Sequence record: OR142618.1
Direction: 5' to 3' (one strand)
DNA length: 64,000 nt
Positions 16,673-47,846 of the stretch are shown in pieces. A program made the position numbers and the translations under genes. Under the pieces are notes generated by a model that saw only the letters and a list, made by a program, of their open reading frames with translations, was not told where the DNA came from and did no database searches. Numbering within the stretch: the first letter of the stretch is position 1; every line of letters begins with the position of its first letter.

Positions 16673-16709
16673 CCATAGACAAATAAGTGCATTATGCTAA
16701 TATATACAT

Positions 16710-17110
16710 GCTTACTAAACAGTTACTTGTTAAGTAAGTTAAAAAGTCGGTAACAGTGATGTTACAGGATACACAGGCAAATACGGTTGGAAGATGCTGT
16801 GTAAAGAACAAATATCCAGCTCATTCCTAGGCATTATAGCCTACACATTATATTTGAATGGGCATAAAAACTTCCAAAGAACCTTCGAAATTTTCTCATA
16901 GGATAGTGTATTAGAAGGAATGCACTATCAGGAAGCTGTAGGTGATGGTTGCTATCCCAGACAGTCCTTTCTAAAATACTTTAATATGATATAAAGTTCT
17001 ATGCAACCGTATACATGCTGTAAGATATTAGATTACACCATGTATTAAACGTAAAAGCAAAACCTTCAGTTAGTAATCTCGCAGTGAAGGGGGTAGGTGA
17101 GTGCTACCCA
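16710..17110 (+). ncRNA. putative large structured RNA or 5' leader (ncRNA-1)
   Basis: ORF-free; upstream TAGACA and extended TGcTAATAT; multiple helices with G-U pairs (see findings). Confidence 0.6.
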
Positions 17111-17152
17111 AACTCAACAAACAACTAATGGTCTAGAAAAGGTATAGTATAC

Positions 17153-17560
17153 ATGCAACATACTCACATTCGTTTCTACAACGAAGAAACTCAACAGATC
17201 GATAACCGCCGTGGCGCTACTGTTGCCTGGGAAACCGCCGGCAACAAGATCCGTATTTCCGTAGCAGCATGTTCGGAAATGGATAACTTCAACCGCAAGA
17301 CCGGACGTGAACATGCTGCTAGCCGTCTCGAAAGTGGCGACTACATCGAGTTTAACGGCACCGAACTTCTTAATGCACAGATGTCTTCTGTAAGTCATGT
17401 GCAGTCTGAAGGTCTCGTTCGTGCTATGTGCTTCTTGCTAGCACAAGGCAAAGGCGATCTATATTACCCGGCAAGCGAAGGTCAGCTTCGCAGCGAAGCC
17501 GAGTGCAATAGCTACAACGCCCTCGAGTACCTGAAACACCAGATGGGCATTCATCAGTAA
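17153..17560 (+). CDS. hypothetical protein, host-like codon usage
   Basis: 135 aa, GC-richer; phage-type motif ACSEMDNFNRKTGREHAASRL. Confidence 0.8.
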   Translation: MQHTHIRFYNEETQQIDNRRGATVAWETAGNKIRISVAACSEMDNFNRKTGREHAASRLESGDYIEFNGTELLNAQMSSVSHVQSEGLVRAMCFLLAQGKGDLYYPASEGQLRSEAECNSYNALEYLKHQMGIHQ

Positions 17561-17573
17561 GTATTCGGCCATT

Positions 17574-17616
17574 CGGAATTGCGATTTAGGTTTTGGAATT
17601 CTAAATCGCAATTCCG
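17574..17616. repeat. perfect 16-bp inverted repeat, 11-nt loop
   Basis: cggaattgcgatttag / ctaaatcgcaattccg. Confidence 0.9.
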
Positions 17617-17801
17617 GTTTCCAAATTCAATTTTAGGCACAAACTCGGATCCGCATTTGCATTTTGCATTTACATTTTGTGTTCTGAGTGTATATGCAAA
17701 ATGCAATCGCGCATGTTGTCGATGCATTGGCTAATCTTTTATTTTTGATAGTTTAGAAAAGATTAAGAACAGAAACTATCTGTAAATTAATAAAAATAAC
17801 A

Positions 17802-17830
17802 TTTACATTACATACACATATGCATATACT
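17802..17830 (+). promoter_or_regulatory. sigma70-type promoter
   Basis: TTTACA-17-TATACT with A-rich upstream sequence. Confidence 0.7.
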
Positions 17831-17836
17831 ATATAT

Positions 17837-18115
17837 AAGTTATGCGCTGTTGCATACGTAAATACCTCCTATGTTGTTTAGATATGTCGATTCTGGTATA
17901 ACCAGATAGACCTAAGGATGATGCTAGTGATTCCTTAGTATTGTATATTCTAGCTGAGTATAAAGAGTAAGGGGCTTTATACAAATAACAATTCCTTAGG
18001 CAAGATATACCGCTCCGTTGTGCTGACGAGCATAATTTGCCCAGATACAGAGCACGTGACTGGTCTGAGGAGCATTTATATCAGAAAGGCAGACTTATGT
18101 TTGCCTTTCTTTTTG
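17837..18115 (+). ncRNA. putative small RNA (ncRNA-2)
   Basis: Lies between a promoter and an intrinsic terminator, has no credible ORF, forms several hairpins and carries ACCUCCU near the 5' end. Confidence 0.6.
18084..18115 (+). terminator. intrinsic terminator
   Basis: gaaaggcagac-ttat-gtttgcctttc followed by T-tract. Confidence 0.8.
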
Positions 18116-18129
18116 AGCAGATATTCTCT

Positions 18130-18300
18130 TATTCACTTCCTTATTCATTTCTTTATTCATCTCTATTTCGTTTGTCACTTCCTTATTCATTTCTTTATTC
18201 ATCTCTATTTCATTTGTTATTGCAAATAAGACTAATTCTTATTTGCGTTTGTAATTTCATTTGTTATTGCAAATAAGACTAATTCGTATTTGCATTTGCA
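18130..18300. repeat. pyrimidine-rich direct repeats
   Basis: cttccttattcatttctttattcatctct x2; catttgttattgcaaataagactaattc x2. Confidence 0.85.
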
Positions 18301-18513
18301 ACGAAAAAGAATATGCAAATAATAACTAATCTTATTTGCATTTGCACTGCCTAGTATATGGATTGGTAGCATACTTGGAAATGGATAGTAAATAAGTAGT
18401 TGATTTGTTTATAAATTATACTTCTACACCATACAGATTGACCTTGCTATATATAGCTCGTGCGCGTGTATACAAGATGGTAAAAAATAATTTAAAAATA
18501 TTTTAAAAAATGC

Positions 18514-18637
18514 TTGACTTTCCATTACTACGACCTTAAAGTGCGAACTGTAGACGCAGTGTGTAGAGCGCTACATAGTAAGCAACGCAGAAAGTAAACA
18601 AAAAATGCTTGACGCAATGCAAACTAGGCTCTACACT
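18514..18637 (+). promoter_or_regulatory. tandem sigma70-type promoters with A-tract UP elements
   Basis: TTGACT-17-TAAAGT (18514-18542) and TTGACG-17-TACACT (18609-18637), both preceded by aaaaatgc. Confidence 0.75.
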
Positions 18638-18720
18638 GTATACAAGCTTAAGGGGTAGGTGCCCCGAAAGTGTAGTAAGTAAACAACATAATCCTTCCAT
18701 CAGCTACAGAGGTATACAAC

Positions 18721-19425
18721 ATGTCCGTACATATCACTCGTCAACGTACCGACAAACAGCACGTCCTGGCACTGGCAATCAACGGCGTGGTCATCGGCCA
18801 GACCATGGCTACTTACACCACCCCGAGCAAGCGCACCTGGTCGGCGACCGCCGAAGTCGAACTGGCAGACGGCACTGTCGTTCAGTTCGAACAGAAGGAA
18901 GTGTTCAGCGCGATCCGCATCACCCGCGAAATCGAGCAGGCGCTCGACGGCAAGGAACTGGCGGCCAAGTACACCCCGGAACCGAAAGTTCCCGGGCAGA
19001 AGGGTCCGAAACCGCTCACCGACGAAAGCCGGCTCAGCAACGCGATCGCGATCGTCAAAGCGGCCATCACCCACACCGGCTTCGACGAAGCTACCCTGGT
19101 GTTCGACGGGGTCGACAAGGCCAACTTCGAGCAGAACAGCACCTCCGTCGGCAACAAGCTGCGTCGCCTGGGCTTCGTCTTCGAACTCGGCGCCGGCAAG
19201 GCGAACAGCGGCAAGGGCTTCCTGATCAACCGCAAAGCGCAGGCCGAGGCAGAAGCTGCCGAACGCAAGGCCAAGCGCGACGCCGAGAAGAAGGAACGCG
19301 AAGAAAAAGCGGCGGCTGCCAAGCGCGAAGCTGACGAACGCAAGGCCAAGCGTGAAGCCGAACGCGCCGAAAAGGTCGCTGAAAAGAACGCAGCGATCGC
19401 CGGGGCAGCGCAGGAAAGCAAGTAA
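18721..19425 (+). CDS. paralog A of a three-member GC-rich family; K/E/A-rich C-terminal tail
   Basis: Shared domain NGVVIGQ...TPSKRTWSA...EQKEVFSAIRITR; GAGG RBS; terminator follows. Confidence 0.9.
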   Translation: MSVHITRQRTDKQHVLALAINGVVIGQTMATYTTPSKRTWSATAEVELADGTVVQFEQKEVFSAIRITREIEQALDGKELAAKYTPEPKVPGQKGPKPLTDESRLSNAIAIVKAAITHTGFDEATLVFDGVDKANFEQNSTSVGNKLRRLGFVFELGAGKANSGKGFLINRKAQAEAEAAERKAKRDAEKKEREEKAAAAKREADERKAKREAERAEKVAEKNAAIAGAAQESK

Positions 19426-19440
19426 TTGCCCAACTGCGCC

Positions 19441-19469
19441 AGAAGGGGAGCAATAGCTCCCCTTTCTTC
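19441..19469 (+). terminator. intrinsic terminator
   Basis: gaaggggagc-aata-gctcccctttc. Confidence 0.8.
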
Positions 19470-19494
19470 ATGACCACACAATCTATATACTACT

Positions 19495-19731
19495 ATGTCT
19501 TTAACTATATTTTCTATATCAGCTAATTTGTATACAATAACTTGGTATTCTGCGCAACTGACACAATGGTGTTATATAGACATAATAACACGCGACGCTA
19601 ATATTTTTATAACCTATCCATTTTATAATAACATATTTGTATCTAAAATTAGTTCTAATACAATAATTGAAGAAAAAATTGAAGAAAAATATGAACACTA
19701 TATTAGAGATATGTCGTGGAATAAGAAATGA
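19495..19731 (+). CDS. hypothetical protein
   Basis: 78-aa AT-rich ORF. Confidence 0.5.
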   Translation: MSLTIFSISANLYTITWYSAQLTQWCYIDIITRDANIFITYPFYNNIFVSKISSNTIIEEKIEEKYEHYIRDMSWNKK

Positions 19732-20391
19732 CTATATAACAGTCAATAATTTTACATATGACTACTATCTAGAGGTAAACACACCTGCGTTTTCTTTAAT
19801 GATAATTATTCCGACAGTTCCTATATTAGACAATATTTGCATTACTTTTATAAAAAAGTATTAATATGAATATATTCTTTATATCAAACAGTCTATCTAA
19901 TATACTATATCATAAAGCTTATGATATACATATGATAGATATTAAGATTAATAATTCTACTTCTATTTGGCTTACATATTCTTTCAATATTACTAAGGTA
20001 TCATTTAAATATATTATCTGATTCGTTTTCTTATTGTATGAGTTGCAATTGCAAATTACTCTTATTTGTAATTGCATATAAACAATCAGTTGCTATTAAA
20101 AGTATTTGCTGTTAATATATTATATAACAGTGCAATTGATATTTTAAAATACAGTGTGCAATACATCTTACATGTATTAAAATTTGTGTGTTACTTATTT
20201 TGCATTAATGATTAATATACCTCTCCTACAGTACAAAACTCATACTATAAACAATTTGTTCGGGCGATCGTTCTCGAAAAGTATACAAGTGAGAGATAGC
20301 AATCTAATTATACTTGTTAGTTTCTATATAGAAGGTTCTAAATATAGAAAATTTGTATATAACAAAGAATACCTCAAAGAGATTTCAGCAT

Positions 20392-21486: not shown

Positions 21487-21487
21487 T

Positions 21488-22386: not shown

Positions 22387-22415
22387 TTGACATTTGATGT
22401 GTATACTAGTATAAT
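22387..22415 (+). promoter_or_regulatory. perfect-consensus sigma70 promoter
   Basis: TTGACA-17-TATAAT. Confidence 0.9.
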
Positions 22416-22421
22416 TTGCTC

Positions 22422-22952
22422 ATGCTGTCGTAACAGCTACTTTGTTCCATTCACAAGCAGCTCTGTTCCATTACTGGATATTGGTAGTAGAAACTATCCC
22501 CATCGTGCCCACAGTATTGTTCTGTTAGAGACAGATTAAAACATACAAAAGTGGGTTATTTAAATTATGATTTTGGGTGCTGAAGTATAGTCGTTAGACA
22601 AGGATATGTCTAATGTTGCAAAGGACTATGCGAAACGTATTATATATCTTATCCGATATTAGATATGTAATAAAAGGATGAAGCTCTGGTAGAAACAGAG
22701 TGTAATTCTTGCTTGTATATCACACGGATATACAAAAGAATATACACACCAACTTCAGCATTGATGTAAATTTTCTAGCATAGGTATATAACATCGATGT
22801 TCCGGGATTCATTGGAAACAATGAGAGAATGATGTAATCTGAGGAAAAAGGTCCCCGCCTCGTCCATATTACGAAATGGTTTTGAGTACTTATGCCCTCG
22901 TCCTATATTGGCATATGGGTTTTATATTTCTCCCGTAATTACGGGAGAATAT
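22422..22952 (+). ncRNA. putative ~530-nt structured RNA (ncRNA-3)
   Basis: No ORF after a consensus promoter; long-range helix tgctgaagt/acttcagca, GAAA tetraloop, ends at a 22-bp palindrome. Confidence 0.7.
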
Positions 22953-23281
22953 AATTTCCTGAACCTACTTGGAAATGGACGCTTCTGCTGTGCTTCGCAC
23001 ATCATCTAAGGGCCTTCACCCTTACCGCTAAGAGCAAGAGCAAAAGCAATATAATTACAAATAAGAATTAATTATTGTTTAGTTTTATCGTAATGAATAT
23101 GAAGATAAAAACTAAACAATAATTCACATGTAGCGTTAGCTACTGTGAATATCTACTATAATATTAACCATATATGTATACAAGGGCATATTATGGCTGT
23201 TACTTGTTGACAGTTTGATATATGTGTTACACTGCATAAATCAAATGTACATTACAATGTTTTGATTATTAGGAACATACT

Positions 23282-25220: not shown

Positions 25221-25514
25221 ATGAAAAAAGAATTTGAATCGCGGATTCGGACTCCCTCTCCGGCGCCAGCGCCCCGGACGCCCGATGTGTGCAGCGAGTG
25301 CAATGACACCGGGAAAGTCTATGACGAAAGCGGCGCCGGTCCGTGGAGTTGCTACGCCTGTACCGGTAACCCGGAGGTGATCGGCTACGCAAACGGCGAT
25401 GAGTTGGACAACATGCTGGATGACCGCACTGCTGTTCTCTCTCCAAGGAAGACCAGTTTTCACACCGTGCCAGTGTATCGACTGATCCACACCCAAAACA
25501 AAAGTTTTCAATAA
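25221..25514 (+). CDS. hypothetical protein with CxxC...CxxC Zn-ribbon, GC-rich
   Basis: CSECNDTG...CYACTG; GGAG RBS. Confidence 0.75.
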   Translation: MKKEFESRIRTPSPAPAPRTPDVCSECNDTGKVYDESGAGPWSCYACTGNPEVIGYANGDELDNMLDDRTAVLSPRKTSFHTVPVYRLIHTQNKSFQ

Positions 25515-25562
25515 AATCGATATGGAATTGGCCCTCCGGCAAGCCGGAATAGAGGTGAAGCC

Positions 25563-25772
25563 ATGAAGACATTTTTGAAGATGCTCGCATATTGCGTGCT
25601 TGGGACATCCATTGGCATTGCCATCAGCCAATGGTTCATCTTCGTCCTAGAGATGAGGCTTGGCGCCGTGCTCTGGTACATCGTTGGCCTTGGTCCTGTG
25701 CTGCTTGTGTTTTGCATTTTGGGCAGCTTCCTTCAATGGCTGATTCATAAGAACTTGGAGAAAAAGCAATGA
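25563..25772 (+). CDS. small membrane protein, GC-rich
   Basis: GAGGT RBS; two hydrophobic segments. Confidence 0.7.
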   Translation: MKTFLKMLAYCVLGTSIGIAISQWFIFVLEMRLGAVLWYIVGLGPVLLVFCILGSFLQWLIHKNLEKKQ

Positions 25773-25843
25773 CCGACCACGCAGAGCTGCGGAGGCTGGC
25801 TAAAGAAGTGATCCGAATTGAACGAAATGAGGATGCAGCATGA
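25769..25843 (+). pseudogene. 24-aa remnant resembling the N-terminus of Ead/Ea22-like prophage proteins
   Basis: MTDHAELRRLAKEVIRIERNEDAA*; ATGA-coupled on both sides. Confidence 0.45.
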
Positions 25844-26376
25844 GCATTGACTGGAGCAAGGCACCAGAGGGTGCGACGCACTACCAACCGGAATCACGTG
25901 GCTTCCATGCGGCATGGTTCCGACTTCAAGGGGGGAAGGCTCGCGAAATGTGGGTCGTGATACCCGGCGGTGCGCTTGAGCACATCATCGATCCGACTGT
26001 CTTCGACGAGAGCATGCAGAACCTGATCGCCCGCCCCGTAGAACCTGCCACCTGGAACGGCCAGGGCCTGCCGCCGGTTGGCCTGATGGTGGAGTGGAAG
26101 GCAGGCCTTGATCACGACTGGCAGCGCGTAACCGTGCTTGCCTACGCCAATGGCGACGCGTGGTTTCAGCCTGAGGATGGCCCGTCTTTCATCGTCGGCA
26201 ACCCGGCAAACTTCAGGCGTATCCGCACCCCCGAGCAGTTGGTCGCCGAGGAGCGGGAAAAGGCGATTAATCAGATGATTTCTGATGCTGGATACGTAGA
26301 TCCGAAGATTGGCACATTTGTGGCTATGCGCAATCTCTACGACGCCGGCTACCGGCGTCGGGAGGAAGGGAAATGA
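25840..26376 (+). CDS. Pseudomonas temperate-phage-type hypothetical protein
   Basis: MSIDWSKAPEGATHY ... WNGQGLPPVG ... RTPEQLVAEEREKAI ... LYDAGYR, a typical prophage-family pattern. Confidence 0.8.
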   Translation: MSIDWSKAPEGATHYQPESRGFHAAWFRLQGGKAREMWVVIPGGALEHIIDPTVFDESMQNLIARPVEPATWNGQGLPPVGLMVEWKAGLDHDWQRVTVLAYANGDAWFQPEDGPSFIVGNPANFRRIRTPEQLVAEEREKAINQMISDAGYVDPKIGTFVAMRNLYDAGYRRREEGK

Positions 26377-26639
26377 GCAGACTGACAGCTGAGCAAGCCC
26401 GTGACATAGCGCGAGCGAAAGACGATGTCGATACTATCCTCAACGACATCGCCAAAACAGCCGCAGAAGGAAAGTACGTGTACACTACCCGCGCCTATGG
26501 GTTCGGCACAGGCGGCGGACGGCGCAGCGACGCGATCCTCAAAGTGTTGCGTAGCCTCGGCTACGACTGTGCTGTGCATGCTGAGGGACGCCAGTCTGTT
26601 GACCTGTGGCTTGAAGTGAAATGGGGAGACAAGCCATGA
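26373..26639 (+). CDS. hypothetical protein, GC-rich
   Basis: 88 aa, ATGA-coupled, GGAAGG RBS. Confidence 0.75.
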   Translation: MSRLTAEQARDIARAKDDVDTILNDIAKTAAEGKYVYTTRAYGFGTGGGRRSDAILKVLRSLGYDCAVHAEGRQSVDLWLEVKWGDKP

Positions 26640-27082
26640 CTAACAACCCCGGAGATTCAAAAATGATCGTAGAAAACGCCAAGCAAGCCGCCGAAGACTT
26701 CAAAACTTCCATGGCTAAGATTTTTCCGAATTACATCGCCAGGGCGTCGGTTTCCGATAACCTTGGTCCGGCGATGACAATTTCGTTTGCGAATGTCGGT
26801 TGCGCTTCCGAAGCCCCTAACAGCATTCTGATGAATGCGAGCGGTTACATGCGCTTTATGATGCATTTGTGTGACAATTGCGGGAATGTATTGCCAGAAG
26901 GTTCGCCGGTAGAAATTGAGCTACTAATGTGGTCTATCCCCTATCGTTCGGAAGTGATCAAGTTCCGCAAGATCAAGGGCAAGACACCAGCCGAAGCTAT
27001 GCAAAAGCTAGTCAAGTGGTTTGAAAAAACGCTGAAGCTATCCGGGGTCTGTAATGGTCTCCACGTAGGACACGCAGAATGA
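26636..27082 (+). CDS. hypothetical protein
   Basis: ATGA-coupled start MTNNPGDSK; GGAG RBS. Confidence 0.7.
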   Translation: MTNNPGDSKMIVENAKQAAEDFKTSMAKIFPNYIARASVSDNLGPAMTISFANVGCASEAPNSILMNASGYMRFMMHLCDNCGNVLPEGSPVEIELLMWSIPYRSEVIKFRKIKGKTPAEAMQKLVKWFEKTLKLSGVCNGLHVGHAE

Positions 27083-27480
27083 ACATTGTGTTGGACAAAT
27101 TGCTGTTTGGCGGTTTCATCGACCAGCACCGCAATGAACTTGCCCAGCAACAACTGAATCGGTTGTTTGCCAAGTACGGTGAGCCGAAGATTGGTATCAC
27201 ACGGGCATGCTTTCTATCTAAGCATTACGTCCTGAAGTTCCCGATTAATGACAGGGGTGAGCGGTGCAACGATTGGGAAGGTAGCTGTTCCGGCAGCTAT
27301 TTGGCACGCGGACGCTGGCTAGAAATCGGAGGCTTCATTTGCGTCATGCAAGAGCGTTTGGTTGAAGTGGATTGGAAGAACAACACCCATGCAAACTTTC
27401 CTGATTGGGTAGGCAGCATAGATTGTGGTCAAGTCGGCTACGATAAACATGGCGTTCTGAAAGCGTATGACTTCGGGTGA
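27079..27480 (+). CDS. minimal protein-kinase-like fold protein (putative)
   Basis: GITRACF, VLKFP, NDWE, VMQERL, IDCGQVG and terminal YDFG in canonical kinase order. Confidence 0.55.
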   Translation: MNIVLDKLLFGGFIDQHRNELAQQQLNRLFAKYGEPKIGITRACFLSKHYVLKFPINDRGERCNDWEGSCSGSYLARGRWLEIGGFICVMQERLVEVDWKNNTHANFPDWVGSIDCGQVGYDKHGVLKAYDFG

Positions 27481-27729
27481 AGCATGACCCCGGTCGACCC
27501 TGACAGTGGCATTAATAGCATCAGTAAAACCACAAGAAATTCTCATAGCTGAAATGGAACAGTTAAGAACAAAGAACAGTGAATACAAAGAAAGAGGTTT
27601 TTAGCGGCTAAATTGTTGCGCTTTTCTTCGATATTTAGTATATTTCTATTGACGTGCTAGGGCATTTTGTACTAATATAGCACTTGAAGGCTAGGTATTC
27701 CGCCAAAGTCTACTACCGGAGAACTTCCG

Positions 27730-28017
27730 ATGATTGTTAAAGTCGCTGCTTTCCGTAACGCTGTTGACCACCTTTTCCGCGTGGTCAATGTCGACTATCA
27801 CGCTTGCGTGCGCGCAGACGAGCTGCGCAACTGGCAAAGCATTGCAAGTCGTGTTCTAGCCGAAGTCGATGCCTTAGAATGCAAGCGCGCTAGACAGGAC
27901 GACCTCGATCAGCAGCGCCGCAGCATCGAAACAGCCCGCGAACGCATGGACCAGGCAGCGCAACGCATCGCCCAACTCGAAACCGTTATCCGTCCCGCTG
28001 TAGGGCGCATGCAATGA
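27730..28017 (+). CDS. hypothetical protein with C-terminal coiled coil, GC-rich
   Basis: TTGACG promoter at 27649; GGAG RBS. Confidence 0.8.
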   Translation: MIVKVAAFRNAVDHLFRVVNVDYHACVRADELRNWQSIASRVLAEVDALECKRARQDDLDQQRRSIETARERMDQAAQRIAQLETVIRPAVGRMQ

Positions 28018-31407: not shown

Positions 31408-31436
31408 TTTACAGCATGCATAGTTTTACGTATTAT
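31408..31436 (+). promoter_or_regulatory. sigma70-type promoter
   Basis: TTTACA-17-TATTAT. Confidence 0.65.
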
Positions 31437-31442
31437 AAACAC

Positions 31443-31945
31443 ACAAAGCAATACAGCATAACGCATTGTAAGCAACACTAAACGGGAGACACCGTCCCGC
31501 AAGCAGCCCGCCCGCGATGTTCGCGGGCTGCGGCAAACAGGTGTACAAGGTCTAGTAACGTGGAAGGCGCAGCATACCTTTCCTTAAATCGGAAATCGGT
31601 CAATGACGTACCTGCCCCTGGACACTGCTAGACCTTGCTGCTACAGGCGGGACAGCTACAAAGGTACACTGTATGTATCTATGCTTTACCCCGCTTTGTA
31701 GCAGGTCTTAAAACGGTCTACTGGCATATGCCTTAGTGCTAGTAGGAATCATTAACCTAAAACTATTATATGCTTCCTGGAGGTGAAGAGTATGCCGCCG
31801 CAGCATTAAATATACATTATGATGATGATAATTATGAATGCCGAAACACCGCTTCGATTCGTTTAAAAGACAGATGTCTGAATCGAATGTTTTTGGGCAA
31901 AAAGGTCCCTTAGATGGGATTTTTTTGCGGCTGCTAACTAGCAAA
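31443..31945 (+). ncRNA. putative ~500-nt two-domain structured RNA (ncRNA-4)
   Basis: GC-rich and ORF-free; nested helices gtcccgc/gcgggac, caaggtctag/ctagaccttg, gcagcccgc/gcgggctgc, gctacaaag/ctttgtagc, tgctagt/actagca. Confidence 0.7.
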
Positions 31946-32482: not shown

Positions 32483-32715
32483 GCGTATACTGTAATTGCA
32501 TAGCATGCGGTGGAGATGATCCGTATGCTGTATGTGAAAATGTGTTAATGGATATCCAAAAGCACAAATATAATACTGGTCCCAGCTGGGGGCTGGTAGT
32601 TGCGGCAGTATTGTGTTTGGTAGGAATGGGATTAGCAGGTAACGCAGCACTATCTGATAAAAAAGAAACACCGTGCGAAACTACACAACAAAAACAAGAG
32701 GTGTATAATGAGTAA
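32479..32715 (+). CDS. small Cys-motif membrane protein
   Basis: CNCIACGG plus one TM segment. Confidence 0.65.
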   Translation: MSVYCNCIACGGDDPYAVCENVLMDIQKHKYNTGPSWGLVVAAVLCLVGMGLAGNAALSDKKETPCETTQQKQEVYNE

Positions 32716-32914
32716 CAAAACAACAGACATGCTGGTAGATGAATTTCTGTGCGAGCGTGCATCTTTTTCTCCGTTTAGCGAAGGTGTTCATGCAGCTAAA
32801 CTAGGGCAGAAATATACAGACTGCCCGTATACCAAAAATGAGCCGTATGAACGTAACGAATGGATTCGAGGACATCAAATGTGGCATGATTATTCTGTTC
32901 AACAATACAAATAA
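32708..32914 (+). CDS. Rmf/CrpP-fold protein (ribosome modulation factor-like)
   Basis: EG-VH-A-AKL-G-QKYTD-CPY-x7-R-NE-W-IR-G matches the RMF pattern G-x2-A-x3-G-x5-CPY-xn-R-x2-W-x2-G. Confidence 0.65.
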   Translation: MSNKTTDMLVDEFLCERASFSPFSEGVHAAKLGQKYTDCPYTKNEPYERNEWIRGHQMWHDYSVQQYK

Positions 32915-36473: not shown

Positions 36474-36818
36474 ATGTTGTTTGATAATAAAAGTATAATA
36501 AGTAAAAGACATTATCCATTGTATAATGGTTTTAATATATTTCGCTGTAGTGTCGGATGTATATATTTTTCATATGATAAAATGTCATTTATTCACGACA
36601 TATTCATGCAAACCATTTCGTTGTTCCTTACGACGTTATTATTGTTTTTACTTATAACTCCTTTATATTATATAGGATTGAAAAATCCAGTCAATATAAC
36701 TACATTTGTTTCGTGTTTAATAATAACCATTCTTATAACAAGTTATTATTTTATGTCAGTTTTGACTTATATATTCTGTATTACCGTTCAGTCAATAATT
36801 TATAAAAGAAAGAAATAA
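36474..36818 (+). CDS. membrane protein (AT-rich)
   Basis: C-terminal hydrophobic segments. Confidence 0.5.
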   Translation: MLFDNKSIISKRHYPLYNGFNIFRCSVGCIYFSYDKMSFIHDIFMQTISLFLTTLLLFLLITPLYYIGLKNPVNITTFVSCLIITILITSYYFMSVLTYIFCITVQSIIYKRKK

Positions 36819-36829
36819 TTTAGTTTCTT

Positions 36830-36906
36830 TTTCATTATCAATATCTTTTTCTTTTTCAATATCTTTTTCTTTATCTTTTTCTTTATCTTTTTCTTTATCT
36901 TTTATC
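36830..36906. repeat. atctttttcttt tandem tract
   Basis: About 4 copies of (t)atctttttcttt. Confidence 0.8.
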
Positions 36907-37029
36907 ATTGCAAATACAAATAATAATTATTCTTATTTGCATTTAGTGATGTAAATAATTCTTATTTGTATTTGCGATTAATTCTTATTTGCTACAATAG
37001 ATAGAATAAGAATAATTCACATTTGCAAT

Positions 37030-37139
37030 GCCGCTAAAAGCGCTGTAAGCGCTGTATATTGCGTAGTAGTGCTAAGCAATGCGTTAGTACAGCTACGCGC
37101 ACAAACGCTGTTATGCGCGCTTGTAGCGCGTTTTAGGGC
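37030..37139 (+). other. ~110-nt imperfect long hairpin
   Basis: ctaaaa/ttttag, gcgctgtaagcgc/gcgcttgtagcgc, gcgtag/ctacgc and gtgctaa/ttagtac; the mismatches are G-T on the + strand. Confidence 0.7.
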
Positions 37140-37374
37140 CCATGCGCATGCGTATACCTGTAGCTTTACATAGTAAAATGCAGAAAAGACGTCGTCTATT
37201 AACGTGCCTGTCTTAATAGAAATATACAATTGTACAATACCTGCGAAATCCTACACACTACAGACATGCAAACAAGCAATGTGCTTGCAAGCATAAAAGT
37301 TTTTAAAAAGTAGTAGACACAGTGTAGCATCCCTAGTAAGCTACACACATAAACAACACAACGGAGTACAAGCT

Positions 37375-37845
37375 ATGTCTAATGTAAGCATCCCTGCTGT
37401 AACTGTAGAGAACATCGGCACCCTGCGCATCGTGCGCACCGCTAACAAGGAGGTCGGAAGTGTGCTCGACCTAAAAGTTAACGGGGTAGTAGTAGGGCAA
37501 GCTTTCCCGCTCTACAGCACAAAAACCCAGCGTAGCTGGAACGCGAGCATGCACGCTACCGTTAACGGCGTAGAGGTGCAGTTTGCACAGGAAGGCGTGT
37601 TCAGTGCAATCCGCATTGCACGGGCGTTCGAGGATGCAGTAAAGCACGCCGTTAGCAACGGCGAACAAGGGCAACCCCTCCCCGCGCCGGCGGCGGCAGA
37701 AGCGCAAGCAGAAGCGCAAGCAGAAGCCCCGGCAGCGCAGACCGAGGATGCGCCGGAGACCCCGGCAGCCGAAGCTAAGCCCGCCCGCAAAGGCGGCAGC
37801 AAAGGCGGCAGCAAAGGCGGCAGCAAAGGCGGCAGCAAAAAGTAA
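37375..37845 (+). CDS. paralog B of three-member family; A/E/P linker and (KGGS)4 tail
   Basis: NGVVVGQ...STKTQRSWNA...AQEGVFSAIRIARA; TAGACA-17-TAAGCT promoter at 37314; GGAG RBS. Confidence 0.9.
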   Translation: MSNVSIPAVTVENIGTLRIVRTANKEVGSVLDLKVNGVVVGQAFPLYSTKTQRSWNASMHATVNGVEVQFAQEGVFSAIRIARAFEDAVKHAVSNGEQGQPLPAPAAAEAQAEAQAEAPAAQTEDAPETPAAEAKPARKGGSKGGSKGGSKGGSKK

Positions 37846-37999
37846 GCGCTGCTAACACAGGAAAGGGGCAACTGCCCCTTTCCTTTTATGTCCTAGTTGT
37901 AAACGCAAATTAATCTTATTTGCATTTGCACAAGTCATTCTCCGGTTGCATTACTGCGGTAAGATGTTAGTATATATGTAGCTATACGGAGTAATTGCT

Positions 38000-38230
38000 A
38001 TGAAGCGCAAGTACCTAAAGGCACAGTTCGAGCATGTCAGTGCCGGGCGAGTTGCAAAAGAACTCGACGAGAAGTTCAATTTCGTTGTAGGCGATAATGT
38101 ACACTACTGGGCCATCTTCGAAACTAATGTCAAACCCGAAGTTCTACAAAAGGCAATTCATGACATGAACGGTGGTGCTTACTGCCATGCATATTCTATT
38201 CCGTATGAGGATGTAGAGGAGTATCTCTAA
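38000..38230 (+). CDS. hypothetical protein
   Basis: GGAG RBS, immediately after joint promoter. Confidence 0.8.
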   Translation: MKRKYLKAQFEHVSAGRVAKELDEKFNFVVGDNVHYWAIFETNVKPEVLQKAIHDMNGGAYCHAYSIPYEDVEEYL

Positions 38231-38444
38231 TGCTCTACTATCGCGATGTTTATGCAGGTGTTTGCTGTTAAACTTGTATAGCCGGCACCAGGTCGCATAT
38301 AACACGCCTAGCCCCATGCAAACTGCGGACATGATCCATTCACGCCTGTAGCGTATGTTCGAAGAATTCGGTTGCAAGCCCGACGGTTGCTCTGCTAGCA
38401 TGTACGAGGATAAGACGCACATTACACTAGCCTGGAGCAAGTAA

Positions 38445-38735
38445 ATGGATATGTCGATTGTGAACAAGCGCTTCGAGAAAGAACTAGCGCTGTTTAATGT
38501 CGAAGTTCTCAGTAAGCGCACAGTGAATCATATAACGAAACCGAACATCGAAGTTTCGTTCAAACTAAAGGGTCATACTACTGAAGAAGAGATGACCACT
38601 GTTACTCAGCTCGCACGTCCCATTATGGAGTATGTAAGCGGACGTAGGGTGGTCTGGGCACATACCGGTCTTTGGCGCTCAATGAAAGACGACCTCGAAG
38701 TAGCAGTGCTGACAATGAAGTTATCCAAACAATAA
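38445..38735 (+). CDS. hypothetical protein
   Basis: GGAG RBS; followed by joint terminator. Confidence 0.75.
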   Translation: MDMSIVNKRFEKELALFNVEVLSKRTVNHITKPNIEVSFKLKGHTTEEEMTTVTQLARPIMEYVSGRRVVWAHTGLWRSMKDDLEVAVLTMKLSKQ

Positions 38736-38890
38736 GAGAAAGGGGCACTTGCCCCTTTCCTTTTATGTCCTAGTTGTAAATGCAAATTACTCTTATTTGC
38801 ATTTGCACAAGTCAATCTCCTGTTGCATTACTGCGGTAAGATGTTAGTATGTGTTTAGCAGTAACACATAACTAGCAGGAGCAACAGACA

Positions 38891-39464: not shown

Positions 39465-39719
39465 AGGAAAGGGGGCAACTGCCCCTTTCCTTTTATGTCC
39501 TAGTTGTAAATGCAAATTATTCTTATTTGCAATGATAATATCCCCGCCACGCAAATAAGAACTAATCTTAGAACAAATATTCACTTGATTTTTCTCCCAA
39601 TATAGTGTATGTGTATACCGGATAAGATTAAGTCTTGTTTGCTTGTTACATTTTATATGTTGCAATGCTAAGGCAATGATACTATTATATGTACAGTAAT
39701 ATAACCCAGGGGATATAAC

Positions 39720-42265: not shown

Positions 42266-42298
42266 CTTGCGTTAGCTGTAATGTATATGTATTATGTA

Positions 42299-42458
42299 CT
42301 CAAGTTTGCAGCAAGACGTATTAATTTGTTTTGCTGTTAGTTGTAACTCCTGCTACCAAGTATGTGTTGAGCTAATGCTCCTGACTTGGTTCTTGGTACA
42401 CTGGTTTGGGTGTACCGTTCTTGAGCTGCAAAGGGCTTGCCCGGAGCAGCTTTTTTTT
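42299..42458 (+). ncRNA. putative ~160-nt small RNA with two CUCCU motifs (ncRNA-5)
   Basis: TTGCGT-17-TATTAT upstream; stems ctcaag/cttgag, ccaagt/acttgg and ggtacac/gtgtacc; terminator gctgc...gcagc followed by T8. Confidence 0.55.
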
Positions 42459-42538
42459 GACCAATATTATTCATTTGACAAAAAATAATAATTAAAAATA
42501 TAATAGCTTAGTGTATAACTTCCCGTATTAGGCTAATT

Positions 42539-43220: not shown

Positions 43221-43552
43221 ATTTATATTAAAATCCCTTTTATTAACTTCAGTTGTCAGTGTTGGCATACTACTGATATTCATTATTATTTCATTATTAA
43301 TGTTGGGCTTAGGACCGATAGTTCCATTCCTTATTTAATTTTAATTATTTGCAAGCAAATGCAAATGCGAATAATTCTTATTATCCAGCAGGCTACTGTA
43401 CCTAATCTTCGTTAGATAAAATCTATTAGAATCTACAAAGTCCATTAAAACGTTCAATTGTACATGGTGGCCAGATCTGCATATACTACACACATGAAGC
43501 AAGCAAACAGCGCTTCATAAACAAACCCAAATACAGCTAGGAGTTCCAAATC

Positions 43553-43990
43553 ATGACCAAAGCAACCGTTACCGTCGAGCAATCCGCAATCAAACTGGTC
43601 CGCCGCAACCTGGAAGGGCACCGGCAGGCCCTGCTGCTGAACGGCGTCGAAGTAGGCAGCAGCGAAGCGTTCTACAAGACCAAAACCCAGCGCACCTGGT
43701 CGGCGAAGATCGACGCCAACATCAACGGCAAGGACATCGTCCTCGAACAGAAAGGCGTGTTCAGTGCGATCCGGATCGCCCGGGCGATGGAACAAGCAAT
43801 CCTGTTCATCCTGACCGACGGCAAAGAAGGCGCCGAGATGCCGGCCAGCACGCTGAGCAAGGAAGAGCAAGCCCACAACCTGGTCAAGGCAGTAGTTCAG
43901 GTTGCCGGCCACGCAGTCCAGTCCGGCGACGCTGCCCCGGCGAAGAAAGGCAGCTCGAAGAAGCGCAAAGAAGCCCAGCCGGAAGCATAA
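43553..43990 (+). CDS. paralog C of three-member family; basic tail
   Basis: NGVEVGS...KTKTQRTWSA...EQKGVFSAIRIARA; AGGAG RBS; terminator at 44004-44029. Confidence 0.9.
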   Translation: MTKATVTVEQSAIKLVRRNLEGHRQALLLNGVEVGSSEAFYKTKTQRTWSAKIDANINGKDIVLEQKGVFSAIRIARAMEQAILFILTDGKEGAEMPASTLSKEEQAHNLVKAVVQVAGHAVQSGDAAPAKKGSSKKRKEAQPEA

Positions 43991-44146: not shown

Positions 44147-44635
44147 TTGAATATATTTGTGACTGACACAAATCCTTATGTATGTGCCAAACATCATTGT
44201 GATGTTCATCTAAGAAAGATGATAGTAGAAACAGCACAATTGTTAAGCACTACTCATTATATAATAAACGGATATACTCCTGCATATAAACCTACTCATA
44301 AAAATCATCCATGTGCCGTTTGGATTAGAGAAAGTTCAAAAAACTATGAATGGACTTATGAACTTCTTACAAGTCTTATAAATGAATTTGAATATAGATT
44401 TGACAAACAACATGCAACTAAAATTCACCTTTCGTCATTAAAAACTATACCAAAACTCCCTAATATAGAAAGAACAGAGTTTGTCTTAGTTATGCCAGAC
44501 GAATTTAAAACAGGTAATGTAACACATTCATATCAGTTATATTTAAATGACAAATTTAAAGAATGGGCATCGAGATCTAACAGACCCATTTATGCTACAT
44601 ATACAAAGACACCTAAACCATATTTTATTAGTTGA
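44147..44635 (+). CDS. pyrimidine-dimer DNA glycosylase / endonuclease V family
   Basis: MNIFVTDTNP...HCDVHLRKMIVETAQLLST...YKPTHKNHPCAVWIRES...NYEW...F..VMPDEFK. Confidence 0.8.
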   Translation: MNIFVTDTNPYVCAKHHCDVHLRKMIVETAQLLSTTHYIINGYTPAYKPTHKNHPCAVWIRESSKNYEWTYELLTSLINEFEYRFDKQHATKIHLSSLKTIPKLPNIERTEFVLVMPDEFKTGNVTHSYQLYLNDKFKEWASRSNRPIYATYTKTPKPYFIS

Positions 44636-44707
44636 AATATAATAAAAATGATTGACATGTACATAAGATCATATTATGCTGTATAAAACAGCAAGGAGTA
44701 GATATAC

Positions 44708-44941
44708 ATGTACCGCAAACTGAATACAAATCCACGCCCAATGCCAAAAACAAAGGCAATTCCAACTAAATTTGTCATTCAGTACACTGCACGGAATAAA
44801 GCAACAGAAAGTTTGTTCAAAAAAAGAACTATTACATTACATGCGTTTGGGCGTCTCGATGCACAAACACTCCTATCGAAACATATCCGAAAAAATAATT
44901 TGGAATTAGGTGTAATTATTGATTTCGGTGAAACAGTTTAG
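44708..44941 (+). CDS. basic hypothetical protein
   Basis: TTGACA-17-TATGCT promoter at 44652; AAGGAG RBS; terminator at 44952-44979. Confidence 0.8.
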   Translation: MYRKLNTNPRPMPKTKAIPTKFVIQYTARNKATESLFKKRTITLHAFGRLDAQTLLSKHIRKNNLELGVIIDFGETV

Positions 44942-45160
44942 TTAGTGACACAGGAAAGGGGGCAGTTGCCCCCTTTCCCATTATTAAGTCAAATGCAAAT
45001 GCAAATACAAATTATTCTTATTTGCACAGATCAGACCATCCATTCCAATAACATTACTAACTTGGATGAAATGGCTTACTACAATGAACTTTGAATACTA
45101 AAAAGTACCTAAGAAGTAATTCCAGTTGTATCTAAAACACTATGTGTTATTATACATATA

Positions 45161-45532
45161 GTGTTTTTATTTCTTATAACTATATTCAATAATAATGGTA
45201 AAACATATATGATTGAAGTAATTAAATGCATTATATGTAATGAATCACCCCGTCCTGGTGCATTTGCAGCATTTATTACTCAAATGCGTCAAGTAGTAAA
45301 ACCTCATGCAACTATAACTAGTTGGAATATTCTGCCCGGCATTAATGATGATCCAACTAGTTATATTCATGCATTCAGTATAAAATCAAAAACAGCATAC
45401 AATATTAATCAAGCAGTTACCTTATTACTAATGTCATTATATAATGCTAGTGAATATAAGACTAGCTACATACCTACTTCGTTTAAAGACTATGAATCTA
45501 CAATAAAACATTTATCTAAGATCAAACAATAA
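45161..45532 (+). CDS. hypothetical protein
   Basis: 123-aa ORF; start probably at the internal MIEVIKC. Confidence 0.55.
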   Translation: MFLFLITIFNNNGKTYMIEVIKCIICNESPRPGAFAAFITQMRQVVKPHATITSWNILPGINDDPTSYIHAFSIKSKTAYNINQAVTLLLMSLYNASEYKTSYIPTSFKDYESTIKHLSKIKQ

Positions 45533-45536
45533 CCAG

Positions 45537-45752
45537 TTGCATATTTACAAATATACATGTATGCTAAAACATATACACAATCATGAGTACATTATCATGA
45601 CAAAAGAAATTGCTTTTACTGAAGGATTAAAAGCAGGCACTCAAATAAAAGAAGGCAAAGCTATCCTAACTGACTTCTTTCGATATTTCAATTCCTTACC
45701 AACTAATATGAGAACTTCTTTTATCATCGGTATCAAAACCGGTAGAAACTAA
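45537..45752 (+). CDS. hypothetical protein
   Basis: Likely start at the internal MTKEIAF. Confidence 0.5.
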   Translation: MHIYKYTCMLKHIHNHEYIIMTKEIAFTEGLKAGTQIKEGKAILTDFFRYFNSLPTNMRTSFIIGIKTGRN

Positions 45753-45839
45753 TAAGCATATTAATTTTCATATTTTGGTAGACAAGGGTACTCACTGGAT
45801 GCATACTGTACACATACAGAACATACGGAGTACAAAGGG

Positions 45840-46109
45840 ATGGATGCGCGTAGCCTGCTTCGCCTGATAGAAGACCTCCCTATAGCTGTCTTCGGCAGCA
45901 CAATGGATATTGTTCATCGAGTCAATTTTGAAGCTCTGGACAATGCCGCCCACACCGACGGGGTAAAAGTCCACGAAGACGGAACCAACCGTTATACGGA
46001 CGCTTTTGTTGATTGTTGGCTCCGCAGCGTCGAAACAATTTTGGCCTGTTGCGATTTTGTGACCGAGGATGCCGCTAAGTGGTATATCGAGCACGGTGTC
46101 AAGTTTTGA
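45840..46109 (+). CDS. hypothetical protein, GC-rich
   Basis: GGAG/AAGGG RBS. Confidence 0.7.
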   Translation: MDARSLLRLIEDLPIAVFGSTMDIVHRVNFEALDNAAHTDGVKVHEDGTNRYTDAFVDCWLRSVETILACCDFVTEDAAKWYIEHGVKF

Positions 46110-46207
46110 CATCCTCCGCCTCGCCTGCAGATAAAAAGGTTGACGTAGACTAGCAATGGACACATAATAATTACAACGCAACGCAACTAGCCCTGGAGGG
46201 CAAAACT

Positions 46208-46357
46208 ATGTGTAACATTCAATGCATGAACAGCAAAGCCGGCGAGTCCTACGCATGGGTTTGGAGCGATAGCGATAGCGATATCTGCTACGAAGTTATC
46301 TTCCGGCATGGCCAAGTCCTCACCCAGGTTTGGCTCGGATATGATATTGTAGCCTAA
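46208..46357 (+). CDS. 49-aa acidic micro-protein
   Basis: TTGACG-17-CATAAT promoter at 46140; GGAGG RBS; terminator at 46366-46390. Confidence 0.7.
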   Translation: MCNIQCMNSKAGESYAWVWSDSDSDICYEVIFRHGQVLTQVWLGYDIVA

Positions 46358-46406
46358 CACCAACTAAAGCCCCGTCCCAGGCGGGGCTTTACCGAAGGAA
46401 AAGATC

Positions 46407-46616
46407 ATGATCGAACAACTGAAAGACATGCTCGTAGCGCAACGCATGCGCATGAACCAACTCGAAAAACTGCGCTACACCGGACGCGTCGCTAGCGAGT
46501 TGCATGCCCACGCCAGGGAATTGTGTGAAGCATTGGAACTGGCAATTGCAAATGCCCAGTGCCTGGAAATGCGCAAGTGCGAAGAGGGCACCCTGCACGC
46601 CCTCTTCGCACAATAA
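46407..46616 (+). CDS. hypothetical protein, GC-rich
   Basis: AAGGA RBS; helical. Confidence 0.7.
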   Translation: MIEQLKDMLVAQRMRMNQLEKLRYTGRVASELHAHARELCEALELAIANAQCLEMRKCEEGTLHALFAQ

Positions 46617-46649
46617 CCCACCGCGCACAACCCGACAAGGAAACTAACC

Positions 46650-47141
46650 ATGAGCACTACCATCCCCGATTCGATTCATCCGAGTGATCTTCCTGAAATC
46701 GGGCTGCCATTAGCCGACGGAACCTTCTTTGCCCGCCAATGGCTCAATGGCAAGGAATACGCCTACGTCGATCTCGGCAAAAGCGCCGAGTTCACTGGAG
46801 AATGGGGCAAGTATGGCCATGACGTGGTCGGCGCCGGCAGCTACCGAGACGGAGCTTCGAACACGGTCGCTATGGCAGAAGCTGGCAGTCCGATTGCCAA
46901 GCAAGCCATGGAGATCGGAGAAGGCGTATTTATTCCCTCTGTTCTGGAACTGGCTCTTCTGTTCTCCGCCAAGCAAGCAGGCGAGTTGTCTGGTTTCGCA
47001 GATCGCTGGTATTGGTCGAGTTCGCAGGACTCCGCTAACGCCGCCTTCAACATGGACTTCGGCGACGGCTACACAAGCGGACACGTCAAGTACGTCGACT
47101 TCCGTGTCCGCCCCGTCCGCAAGATTCTCATCCTTCAGTAA
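46650..47141 (+). CDS. DUF1566 / Lcl C-terminal (C-type lectin fold) protein
   Basis: IPSVLELALL ... WYWSSSQDSANAAFNMDFGDG ... FRVRPVR. Confidence 0.75.
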   Translation: MSTTIPDSIHPSDLPEIGLPLADGTFFARQWLNGKEYAYVDLGKSAEFTGEWGKYGHDVVGAGSYRDGASNTVAMAEAGSPIAKQAMEIGEGVFIPSVLELALLFSAKQAGELSGFADRWYWSSSQDSANAAFNMDFGDGYTSGHVKYVDFRVRPVRKILILQ

Positions 47142-47279
47142 TATAGCCCCGGCGAGCAAACATTGCTCGGAAGGTGCTAGCTGAACGACTGACGGAACAA
47201 TAAATAACGGTTGACGTGCGTCTAGCGGCGGATGCATAATAGCTACAAGACAACACAGCAAGCCCCGGAGGGCGCAACC

Positions 47280-47480
47280 ATGTCCCAGATCGTAGATGTC
47301 AAGCAAATTGCAATTGATGCAAACCGTCGCCCGGCCTACAATGCGGTCATGGTGCGCTGGTTGATGCAGGAAGCTGAACTTCACCGTAGCTGCGGTCGCA
47401 CCGCTACCCTGTTCTGCATCGTTCGCAACCGCCCCGACGGCACCCAGCGCCAGCTTGTGCAGCTTGTGGCTAGCGAGTAA
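47280..47480 (+). CDS. hypothetical protein, GC-rich
   Basis: TTGACG-18-CATAAT promoter at 47211; GGAGG RBS. Confidence 0.75.
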   Translation: MSQIVDVKQIAIDANRRPAYNAVMVRWLMQEAELHRSCGRTATLFCIVRNRPDGTQRQLVQLVASE

Positions 47481-47510
47481 CCTCTACAACCCTACGCCCA
47501 GGAGGCCGTC

Positions 47511-47675
47511 ATGAATGCTGTACTGGCTAAACTTCAAAACGAACGCTGTGCAACCCTTCGCTTGATGTTGCTCCCAGAGAACCGCGGGTATCGGTTCACT
47601 GACCACCCCTGGGCAAAGCAAATCCGCAATCTGCACGACGAAGCCAAGTGCATCCGCGAACATTACAGTAAGTAA
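47511..47675 (+). CDS. 54-aa hypothetical protein, GC-rich
   Basis: AGGAGG RBS; MNAVLAKLQNERC... Confidence 0.7.
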   Translation: MNAVLAKLQNERCATLRLMLLPENRGYRFTDHPWAKQIRNLHDEAKCIREHYSK

Positions 47676-47846
47676 TCCAATCCCACTGGATCTTACTGAG
47701 GATAAGATAATGACCTACGCAGAACTAATAAAGAAATTTCATAACATAGAAGCCGGTCATTATCTTTCCGACATTGAAGTAATCTTTCAGGAACATTGAG
47801 TACAACATTAATGAATTGCTGGGCTTCATCATTTATTGACTAGCCT

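Follow-up and report, generated by a model that had tools for sequence, protein, structure and literature searches.

The 64,000-nt window analysed here corresponds, at 100% identity, to nucleotides 186,001-250,000 of Pseudomonas phage Callisto (OR142618.1), and it is matched at about 97% in ten further PA5oct-like jumbo phages (genus Wroclawvirus). We investigated the span between 16.7 and 47.7 kb of this window, in which non-coding RNAs (ncRNAs), a repeated 27-bp dyad operator, three basic paralogous proteins and GC-rich gene cassettes are set between AT-rich arrays of small open reading frames (ORFs). As window position 9,729 aligns with coordinate 1 of PA5oct, the span is equivalent to approximately 7.1-38 kb of PA5oct, from gp34 to about gp105. 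Homology with PA5oct is colinear over its ~7.1-39 kb, including ncRNA001 and ncRNA002, in blocks that are 85-97.6% identical. The PA5oct record annotates a 39,080-bp repeat region from its coordinate 1, and the duplication of this region at both genome ends is known from experiments on PA5oct that include read coverage (PMC7318152). According to the same study, the repeat stretch is highly transcribed 5 min after infection, nearly all from the + strand; infection is sensitive to rifampicin and so needs the host RNA polymerase, the promoters contain TTGAC and TATAATA motifs, and the terminators are factor-independent (Lood et al., 2020, PMC7318152; RNA-seq data GSE130190). With the timing carried over from these PA5oct experiments, the Callisto span would be the early, host-polymerase-transcribed part of a terminal repeat. 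An earlier sequence-only reading of the window had proposed an early programme in this span, which is borne out by the published RNA-seq and rifampicin data and not by sequence (PMC7318152). It had also proposed an undescribed system; the region, ncRNA001 and ncRNA002 are already in the PA5oct literature, and the early programme is real but was described before. What appears to be new is the operator with its junction units, an orphan family of paralogs accompanying the operator, and ncRNA001 conservation outside the genus.

The genes of the span are separated by 36 intergenic gaps on the + strand, of which 19 contain a terminator hairpin, 25 a promoter-like site, 12 both and 18 an operator-like site, in line with the promoter-terminator units that had been claimed. 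Terminator-like sites are about twice as frequent as expected from shuffled sequence, and promoter-like counts show no enrichment in the AT-rich DNA of the span. Within a gap the usual order is terminator, then operator, then promoter. The composite junction consists of an intrinsic terminator (GGGG-loop-CCCCTTTCC), followed about 20 nt on by the 27-bp dyad and a further ~20-60 nt on by a sigma-70-type promoter. When eight junction units were aligned, half of them from the window and half from the metagenomic contig L078, the conserved blocks were the terminator stem, an invariant operator core and a TTGCAT-17-TAGTAT promoter. In the well-conserved units the right half-site ends ~20-27 nt ahead of the -35 hexamer, which places the centre of the dyad near -70.

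The operator is built on the 9-mer CTTATTTGC, the shared motif of the sequence-only reading. Its 18 occurrences, where 1.04 would be expected, all fall within 18,222-45,025. This 9-mer is the better-conserved half of the 27-bp dyad TGCAAATAAGAA-N3-TTCTTATTTGCA, of which the span contains at least 20 copies. A BLAST search with the 41-nt operator found ten places in the whole 287-kb Callisto record; since these are the same ten found in the window, the operator is confined to 18.3-45.0 kb at the sensitivity of BLAST. Exact copies of the motif number 17-23 in PA5oct, Paride and Cassandra, and a scan of IMG/VR gave 59 contigs with one match each, which we took as chance. We rejected a role of CTTATTTGC as a MotA-box-like -30 element because it keeps no consistent distance from any -10 hexamer. 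The properties sought for the site of a dimeric regulator, namely a symmetric dyad, numerous copies placed alike with respect to promoters and conservation across divergent genomes, were all found, and they make a binding site for a regulator the most likely role of the dyad. T/C-rich repeats precede the operator clusters of paralogs 1 and 2 (Table 1), tracts similar to those at 18110-18217 being found at 36820-36905 before paralog 2 and at 3040-3160 of the metagenomic contig L003. The Callisto record annotates minus-strand ORFs across these tracts (18095-18190 and 36792-36908; 31 and 38 aa, of low complexity and rich in K, E, D and N), which are probably not genes.

Table 1. Features of the Callisto span in window coordinates; L003, L005, L077 and L078 are metagenomic contigs, P0005, P0007 and P0012 homologous proteins
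Feature	Position	Strand	Support or relatives
16.7-kb stretch: promoter-like TAGACA-16-TAATAT with TG, then 440-nt ORF-poor leader of gp35 homologue	16676-17152	+	folding z = -2.5
gp35 homologue, 135 aa, GC 0.50	17153-17560	+	42% identical to L003:1980-2396, same gene order
Inverted repeats of ATTTGCA-type half-sites upstream of ncRNA001 promoter	17650-17715		read from sequence
ncRNA001, ~276 nt (~17838-18113); promoter TTTACA-17-TATACT (17802-17830); intrinsic terminator (18084-18113)	17802-18113	+	PA5oct ncRNA001, 99.6% identity
T/C-rich repeats, 12-nt period, between ncRNA001 terminator and operator cluster	18110-18217		repeat scan
Cluster of three 27-bp dyads upstream of paralog 1	18217-18340		motif and repeat scans
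Two tandem promoters, TTGACT-17-TAAAGT and TTGACG-17-TACACT, before paralog 1	18514-18637	+	both kept in L003 3250-3374
Basic paralog 1, 234 aa, pI 9.4, GC 0.62	18721-19425	+	PA5oct gp38; homologue P0012 (244 aa) in L003
Candidate ncRNA, ~540 nt; consensus promoter TTGACA-17-TATAAT (22387-22415); hairpin (22928-22949)	22387-22960	+	unannotated in PA5oct
GC-rich (0.48-0.60) variable cassette island	25221-28017	+	Callisto, PA5oct, Paride and Cassandra have different gene sets here; one gene matches phrog_3483
ncRNA002, ~485 nt (31443-31927); promoter TTTACA-17-TATTAT (31408-31436); terminator (31904-31927)	31408-31927	+	PA5oct ncRNA002, 92.4% identity
Rmf-like small protein, 68 aa	32708-32914	+	PF04957, E = 2.5e-5, 24.7 bits, under gathering score 27.9
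T/C-rich repeats, then operator cluster (~six half-sites, 36909-37027) upstream of paralog 2	36820-37027		homologous cluster in L078 2604-2717
Basic paralog 2, 156 aa, pI 9.0, GC 0.60, KGGS-repeat tail	37375-37845	+	sequence, model
Three direct junction-unit copies (terminator, operator, promoter)	37861-37982, 38738-38859, 39468-39589	+	93% and 61% identity to reference copy
42.3-kb stretch, terminator ~42425-42460, then consensus promoter (42475-42504)	42266-42460	+	folding z = -3.4; 98.2-98.5% identical in relatives
Single operator upstream of paralog 3	43340-43385		homologous upstream regions in L005, L077
Basic paralog 3, 145 aa, pI 9.7, GC 0.60	43553-43990	+	homologues include P0005, P0007
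Conserved early gene resembling DenV-type glycosylase / 'DNA binding protein'	44147-44635	+	phrog_624, E = 6.9e-52
Last terminator-plus-operator junction of span	44946-45026	+	motif and gap scans
Second GC-rich (0.50-0.56), partly variable cassette block	45840-47480	+	88-98% identity to relatives; one gene matches phrog_4245

The three basic paralogs, which are gp38, gp86 and gp98 in PA5oct and were already recognised as paralogs in the sequence-only reading, have isoelectric points (pI) of 9.0-9.7 and a GC content of 0.60-0.62, and share 41-48% identity among themselves. In members of the family, an N-terminal domain of ~85 residues is joined by a Pro/Ala/Glu-rich linker to a tail rich in lysine. 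The model of paralog 2 shows a five-strand sheet and a helix (pLDDT of ~95 over residues 8-95) followed by a disordered tail. A profile made from the paralog alignment and searched against 1.8 billion protein representatives gave 23 matches only, defining a small orphan family; a word-based homologue search with paralog 2 matched the genus Wroclawvirus only, and Foldseek of its model against BFVD returned matches within its own family only. PA5oct gp38, the equivalent of paralog 1, is annotated as a structural (virion) protein detected by ESI-MS/MS (tandem mass spectrometry with electrospray ionisation). The GC content of ~0.6 is kept by the paralogs both in the window and in L003, which would agree with selection of immediate-early genes for codons preferred by the host. 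Upstream of paralogs 1 and 2, relatively GC-rich leaders or promoter regions of ~350 nt (18350-18720 and 37030-37374) lie between the operator cluster and the start codon and might be further structured RNAs.

Relatives outside the genus were found on metagenomic contigs. L003 (14 kb, GC 0.44) contains a gp35 homologue, a 1-kb gap with an ncRNA001 homologue and then a 244-aa homologue of paralog 1, i.e., the same order of gp35, ncRNA001 and paralog 1 as in the window. L078 (GC 0.48) has ~75-79% DNA identity over window 38-39.5 kb and carries 11 operator half-sites, seven of them exact, against 0.47 expected; six form a cluster 295-397 nt upstream of the paralog gene, and another four occur one by one in successive intergenic gaps. 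L005 has three half-sites (two exact; 0.09 expected) and L077 two (one exact; 0.11 expected), in both contigs upstream of the paralog gene. Taken over L078, L005 and L077, the half-sites cluster 255-400 nt upstream of the paralog gene, and the paralog homologues on metagenomic contigs are 37-42% identical in protein sequence to paralog 2. Operator and paralog family thus co-occur across divergent phages, and the paralogs associate with the operator at least as well as with the RNAs. The sequence-only reading had named an independent distribution of RNAs, motif and paralogs across relatives as the outcome that would speak against their association; RNAs, paralogs and operators were present in every Wroclawvirus examined, and operator and paralogs also in divergent metagenomic phages, so that the co-location was not refuted. 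A 67-aa protein of L003 (9954-10157) matches the release-factor family RF-1 (PF00472) and has no counterpart in the window; judged by this match, it would be a translation-related small gene.

Five structured non-coding transcripts had been claimed, of which those at 17.8 and 31.4 kb are ncRNA001 and ncRNA002, and those at 16.7, 22.4 and 42.3 kb, with PA5oct coordinates of about 7,116-7,558, 12,860-13,400 and 32,700-32,860, respectively, stand as candidates only. In PA5oct, ncRNA001 makes up 2.4-5.1% of phage reads and ncRNA002 1.2-5.0% (PMC7318152). ncRNA001 folds with a z score of -3.6, and the consensus fold with its L003 homologue reaches an alifold z of -5.2 against column shuffles, a value that none of 200 shuffles equalled; taken alone, the number of compensatory pairs is unremarkable (39 of 200 shuffles). 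Both RNAs have a common core TCGATTCTGG-loop-CCAGATAGA, a GACG-loop hairpin with four compensatory changes between them, a 5-bp hairpin whose loop is rich in C and U (AAUACCUCC in the Callisto RNA and CUCCCUCUC in that of L003), and a matching terminator. We conclude that ncRNA001 is a genuine conserved structured RNA. An apical loop contains an ACCUCCU motif resembling an anti-Shine-Dalgarno sequence; such motifs had been claimed for two RNAs and were verified in this one alone. The C/U-rich loop could pair with purine-rich ribosome-binding sites. At the L003 position matching the inverted repeats of 17650-17715, nucleotides 2483-2531 carry TTGCATTTATAATTTGCA / TGCAAGATATAAATGCAA. A scan of IMG/VR for the ncRNA001 core motif gave six loci, whose flanks were judged to be chance or coding matches, and the interpretation of CUGACGAG in ncRNA001 as a hammerhead core was dropped, with no Rfam match and flanking helices that misfit.

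ncRNA002 has a folding z of -5.6 and no common fold with the GC-rich non-coding block at the matching position of L003 (z = -0.05). Within it, at 31776-31808, a strong GGAGGTGA ribosome-binding site precedes a mini-ORF of five codons, MPPQH, which is not conserved in the L003 block. By its sequence features, the 22.4-kb locus appears to be the strongest of the three unverified candidates: its promoter is a perfect consensus, it lacks a credible ORF, the sole 50-codon frame starting within the -35 hexamer, its folding z is -4.6, and relatives keep it at 99.0-99.5% identity, a value that falls to 94.7-96.9% over 22960-23281, just beyond the predicted hairpin. For the 16.7-kb stretch the simplest interpretation is the long leader of the gp35 homologue; PA5oct, Paride and Cassandra match it at 98.9-99.5%, and PA5oct annotates a 35-aa ORF there. 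The 42.3-kb stretch is most simply a 3' untranslated region (UTR) or a small RNA ending at the terminator. No Rfam family was found in the span at gathering thresholds, with only chance microRNA or sraA matches far below threshold at E <= 1, and an ARAGORN search found no tRNA.

The conserved elements of the span are interleaved with sequence of a different composition. GC-rich islands at 17-20, 25-28, 35-36, 37-40, 43-44 and 46-48 kb stand out from a background GC of 0.26-0.30. The sequence-only reading had described GC-rich genes with host-like codons; the islands are there, whereas the GC content at third codon positions of their genes, 0.5-0.77, is shifted towards host usage rather than host-like. 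All RNA loci, the three paralogs and the Rmf-like gene are present in PA5oct, Paride and Cassandra, and core elements are 92-99.8% identical to PA5oct. By comparison between relatives, genes at 25221-25514, 25840-26376, 26636-27480, 27730-28017 and 38000-38735 are present in some and absent in others, and at 45840-46109 only 51 nt match in Paride. Segments of the 25-28 kb island are 89-95% identical at the DNA level to unrelated Pseudomonas aeruginosa phages such as BR153a, the CF series, Ab17 and EV13. The two-gene cassette at 38000-38735, which Cassandra has and PA5oct and Paride lack, lies between two 122-nt junction units with 93% identity to each other, and a PA5oct-specific insertion at 39531 begins at the operator. 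The modularity, shared operator and cassettes of the sequence-only reading are thus recovered, the operator as a repeated element and the cassettes as genes that differ between relatives.

Pfam and PHROGs searches of the 64 coding sequences of the span gave almost no matches. A kinase-like gene had been claimed, and no kinase family was found among them (Pfam, E <= 0.01). The likewise claimed Rmf-like gene scores below the family threshold (Table 1); phmmer against the PDB found nothing for it, and its relatives are within the genus only. For the gp35 homologue there was no Pfam, PHROG or PDB match, and Foldseek with its structure models, one of five being confident, gave no significant neighbour in PDB or BFVD. 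A scan of IMG/VR found no relative of gp35 and a metagenome scan one near-identical fragment; a word-based search recovered the genus plus one metagenomic homologue only. The gene at 44147-44635 also matches Pyr_excise with 21.2 bits, under the cut-off of 23.

The AT-rich flanking arrays that had been described around the span are confirmed, including on the left a family of seven paralogous small ORFs (~93-105 aa) at 7840-12699. Between 13.1 and 16.0 kb the window has tiny ORFs only, and PA5oct annotates genes of 40-55 aa there. Tandem repeats of TAGTGTACAAATAATGAGTGA-type units with a period of ~126 nt occupy 9378-9728 and end exactly at PA5oct coordinate 1, the left end of the terminal repeat; the Paride record labels the matching stretch as a 'CRISPR' repeat_region, probably an annotation artefact. 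At 48270-48500, close to where the right end of the terminal repeat is expected, there is a conserved non-coding block in which two TTGACA-type promoter-like sites are followed by CTATAGGT(T)CACT-type repeats in tandem. L077 and L005 share the block at 79-82% identity, directly after the paralog gene and near the contig ends; it might be an element of the repeat boundary or of packaging, or a further small RNA.

Altogether, we consider it probable that the span is a modular early region of the terminal repeat, in which terminator-operator-promoter junctions connect a conserved core with exchangeable cassettes and the dyad is most likely the site of a dimeric regulator. Such a region would consist of a few dozen short + strand transcription units, many of them joined by composite junctions, with a conserved core (the gp35 homologue, ncRNA001, ncRNA002, the paralogs, the Rmf-like gene and others) interleaved with GC-rich variable cassettes, part of which derives from other Pseudomonas phages. 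A dimeric regulator on the dyad, ~70 bp upstream of the predicted starts, could co-ordinate the early promoters either by activation at injection or by later shut-off, and the repeated junction units would supply homology for the gain and loss of cassettes, as proposed here by analogy with the PeSLs of T4-like phages. The basic paralog family leads among the candidates for this regulator because gp38 is reported in PA5oct virions and because operators (clustered or, for paralog 3, single) lie upstream of each paralog; this assignment, made by association, is a tentative one. It is tempting to speculate further that the paralogs are a new class of sequence-specific DNA-binding regulator, with a sheet-plus-helix domain and a histone-H1-like tail and with one member delivered in the virion, which times the early programme through the dyad, that ncRNA001 acts as a riboregulator through its C/U-rich loop on ribosome-binding sites, and that this circuit is conserved in Wroclawvirus and its uncultured relatives; in this combined form the proposal is doubtful.

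Several results weigh against a modular early region under a common regulator. Within the genus, the operator core is no better conserved than its flanks (2.4% versus 2.8% differences, p = 0.65), and the operator is not enriched on the 14 kb of L003, with little or no enrichment on L079 and L080 either. The distances between operator and promoter derive from consensus promoter matches, and some gaps either have a spacing of 50-140 nt or lack a recognisable promoter. Of about five indel sites only two have junction units beside them; the units are missing from the breakpoints at 25239, 25766, 26640 and 28156, which are plain gene boundaries. As for the paralogs, no recognisable DNA-binding domain, helix-turn-helix included, was found in the proteins of the span in the Pfam and PHROGs searches, and Foldseek of the paralog 2 model gave no significant PDB neighbour (best E = 0.06, ThermoDBP-RP2, TM ~0.2), nor did the paralogs significantly match a solved member of the ThermoDBP, PC4/Sub1 or MS2-coat-like nucleic-acid-binding folds. 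An early protein detected in virions by mass spectrometry may be carry-over, and operator and paralogs may occur together because the whole region has a common ancestry, with no direct interaction between them.

The junctions might instead be mainly recombination modules of the PeSL kind, which persist through cassette exchange with no dedicated regulator binding the dyad. The near-identical junctions around the present/absent cassette, the second indel that starts at the operator, the same composite units between different genes in L078 and the precedent of T4-like phages (PMC2839356, PMC4122927) would all fit such modules. Exchange, however, needs neither dyad symmetry nor clusters of 3-6 half-sites nor a preferred orientation and position relative to promoters, all of which typify protein-binding sites, and the 12-nt half-site is exact in several copies in phages that are only ~75-80% identical around it while the flanks drift; we therefore regard recombination modules without a regulator as unlikely. 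The sequence-only reading had focused on host translation, with the RNAs and the basic paralogs forming ribonucleoproteins (RNPs) that, together with the Rmf-like protein, reprogram it early in infection. This is suggested by the ACCUCCU in the apical loop of ncRNA001 and the C/U-rich loop with CCUC of the matching L003 hairpin, by the order of gp35, ncRNA001 and paralog 1 kept in L003, by the sub-threshold RMF match, by the abundance of ncRNA1/2 throughout infection (PMC7318152), and by the lysine-rich tails and sheet-plus-helix domain of the paralogs, whose non-significant structural neighbours include the ssDNA- or RNA-binding ThermoDBP and the MS2 coat protein. Yet an interaction between RNA and protein is a proposal only, the RMF score is under the Pfam threshold with no PDB relative, the kinase-like gene is missing from the 64 coding sequences, the anti-Shine-Dalgarno-like motif is verified in one RNA only, ncRNA002 has no fold conserved with its positional analogue in L003, and the distribution of the paralogs among relatives follows that of the DNA operator no less closely than that of any RNA, all of which makes translational reprogramming by RNPs quite improbable. 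A role of the operator clusters and T/C-rich repeats (18.1-18.35 and 36.8-37.0 kb) as iterons of a replication origin or of packaging, rather than as transcriptional operators, would agree with clustered dyads that adjoin strand-asymmetric short tandem repeats and with their location inside the terminal repeat. Most copies, however, are single and spread over ~20 intergenic sites in a fixed order of terminator, operator and promoter, and both presumed repeat boundaries have separate tandem repeats of their own, so that we consider iterons very improbable and retain the site of a dimeric regulator as the preferred interpretation of the dyad.

PA5oct-like phages are considered for therapeutic use, and dormant Pseudomonas aeruginosa is killed by one of them, Paride; of the ~100 early genes in these phages almost none has an assigned function. 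A single operator that marks the whole early programme would offer a practical handle for finding the regulator and for switching the programme experimentally. The junction units would explain how early cassettes are swapped, and the cassettes are likely determinants of host range or anti-defence. ncRNA001 is among the few phage ncRNAs that join published abundance with structure conserved outside the genus, and for this reason functional work could well start with it.

The general organisation recalls the host-takeover module in the terminal redundancy of the Bacillus phage SPO1 and the pre-early region of T5, both of them terminal-repeat regions dense in small early genes with strong host-sigma promoters and terminators; these gene sets are expressed first and are thought to subvert the host. 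The SPO1 module comprises ~13 kb and 24 genes and is not known to contain abundant ncRNAs or a common dyad. The closest described locus is the early repeat region of PA5oct (gp34-gp105), the sister-phage locus with the same promoters, terminators and two abundant ncRNAs (PMC7318152). The main text of Lood et al. presents the -35/-10 motifs and the terminators and does not describe the 27-bp dyad, junction units, paralog family, cassette turnover or relatives outside the genus (PMC7318152). Other Pseudomonas phage ncRNAs, namely ncRNA1/2 of PAK_P3 and the UTR-derived RNAs of phiKZ (PMC10914365), are, like ncRNA001 and ncRNA002, highly expressed and genus-conserved with no assigned function. In contrast to these, the Callisto RNAs apparently have promoters and terminators of their own instead of being processed from UTRs and are longer (~280 and 485 nt), and ncRNA001 is conserved past the genus with a common fold. 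The junction units themselves most resemble the PeSLs of T4-like phages, both being short terminator-plus-early-promoter composites that are repeated between small genes of a plastic region and found, in Callisto for some of the units, at the edges of indels that separate close relatives (PMC2839356, PMC4122927). This likeness is one of architecture: PeSLs are found in internal hyperplastic regions whereas the Callisto units lie in a terminal repeat where they flank only some of the indels, and the Callisto units carry between terminator and promoter the additional 27-bp dyad.

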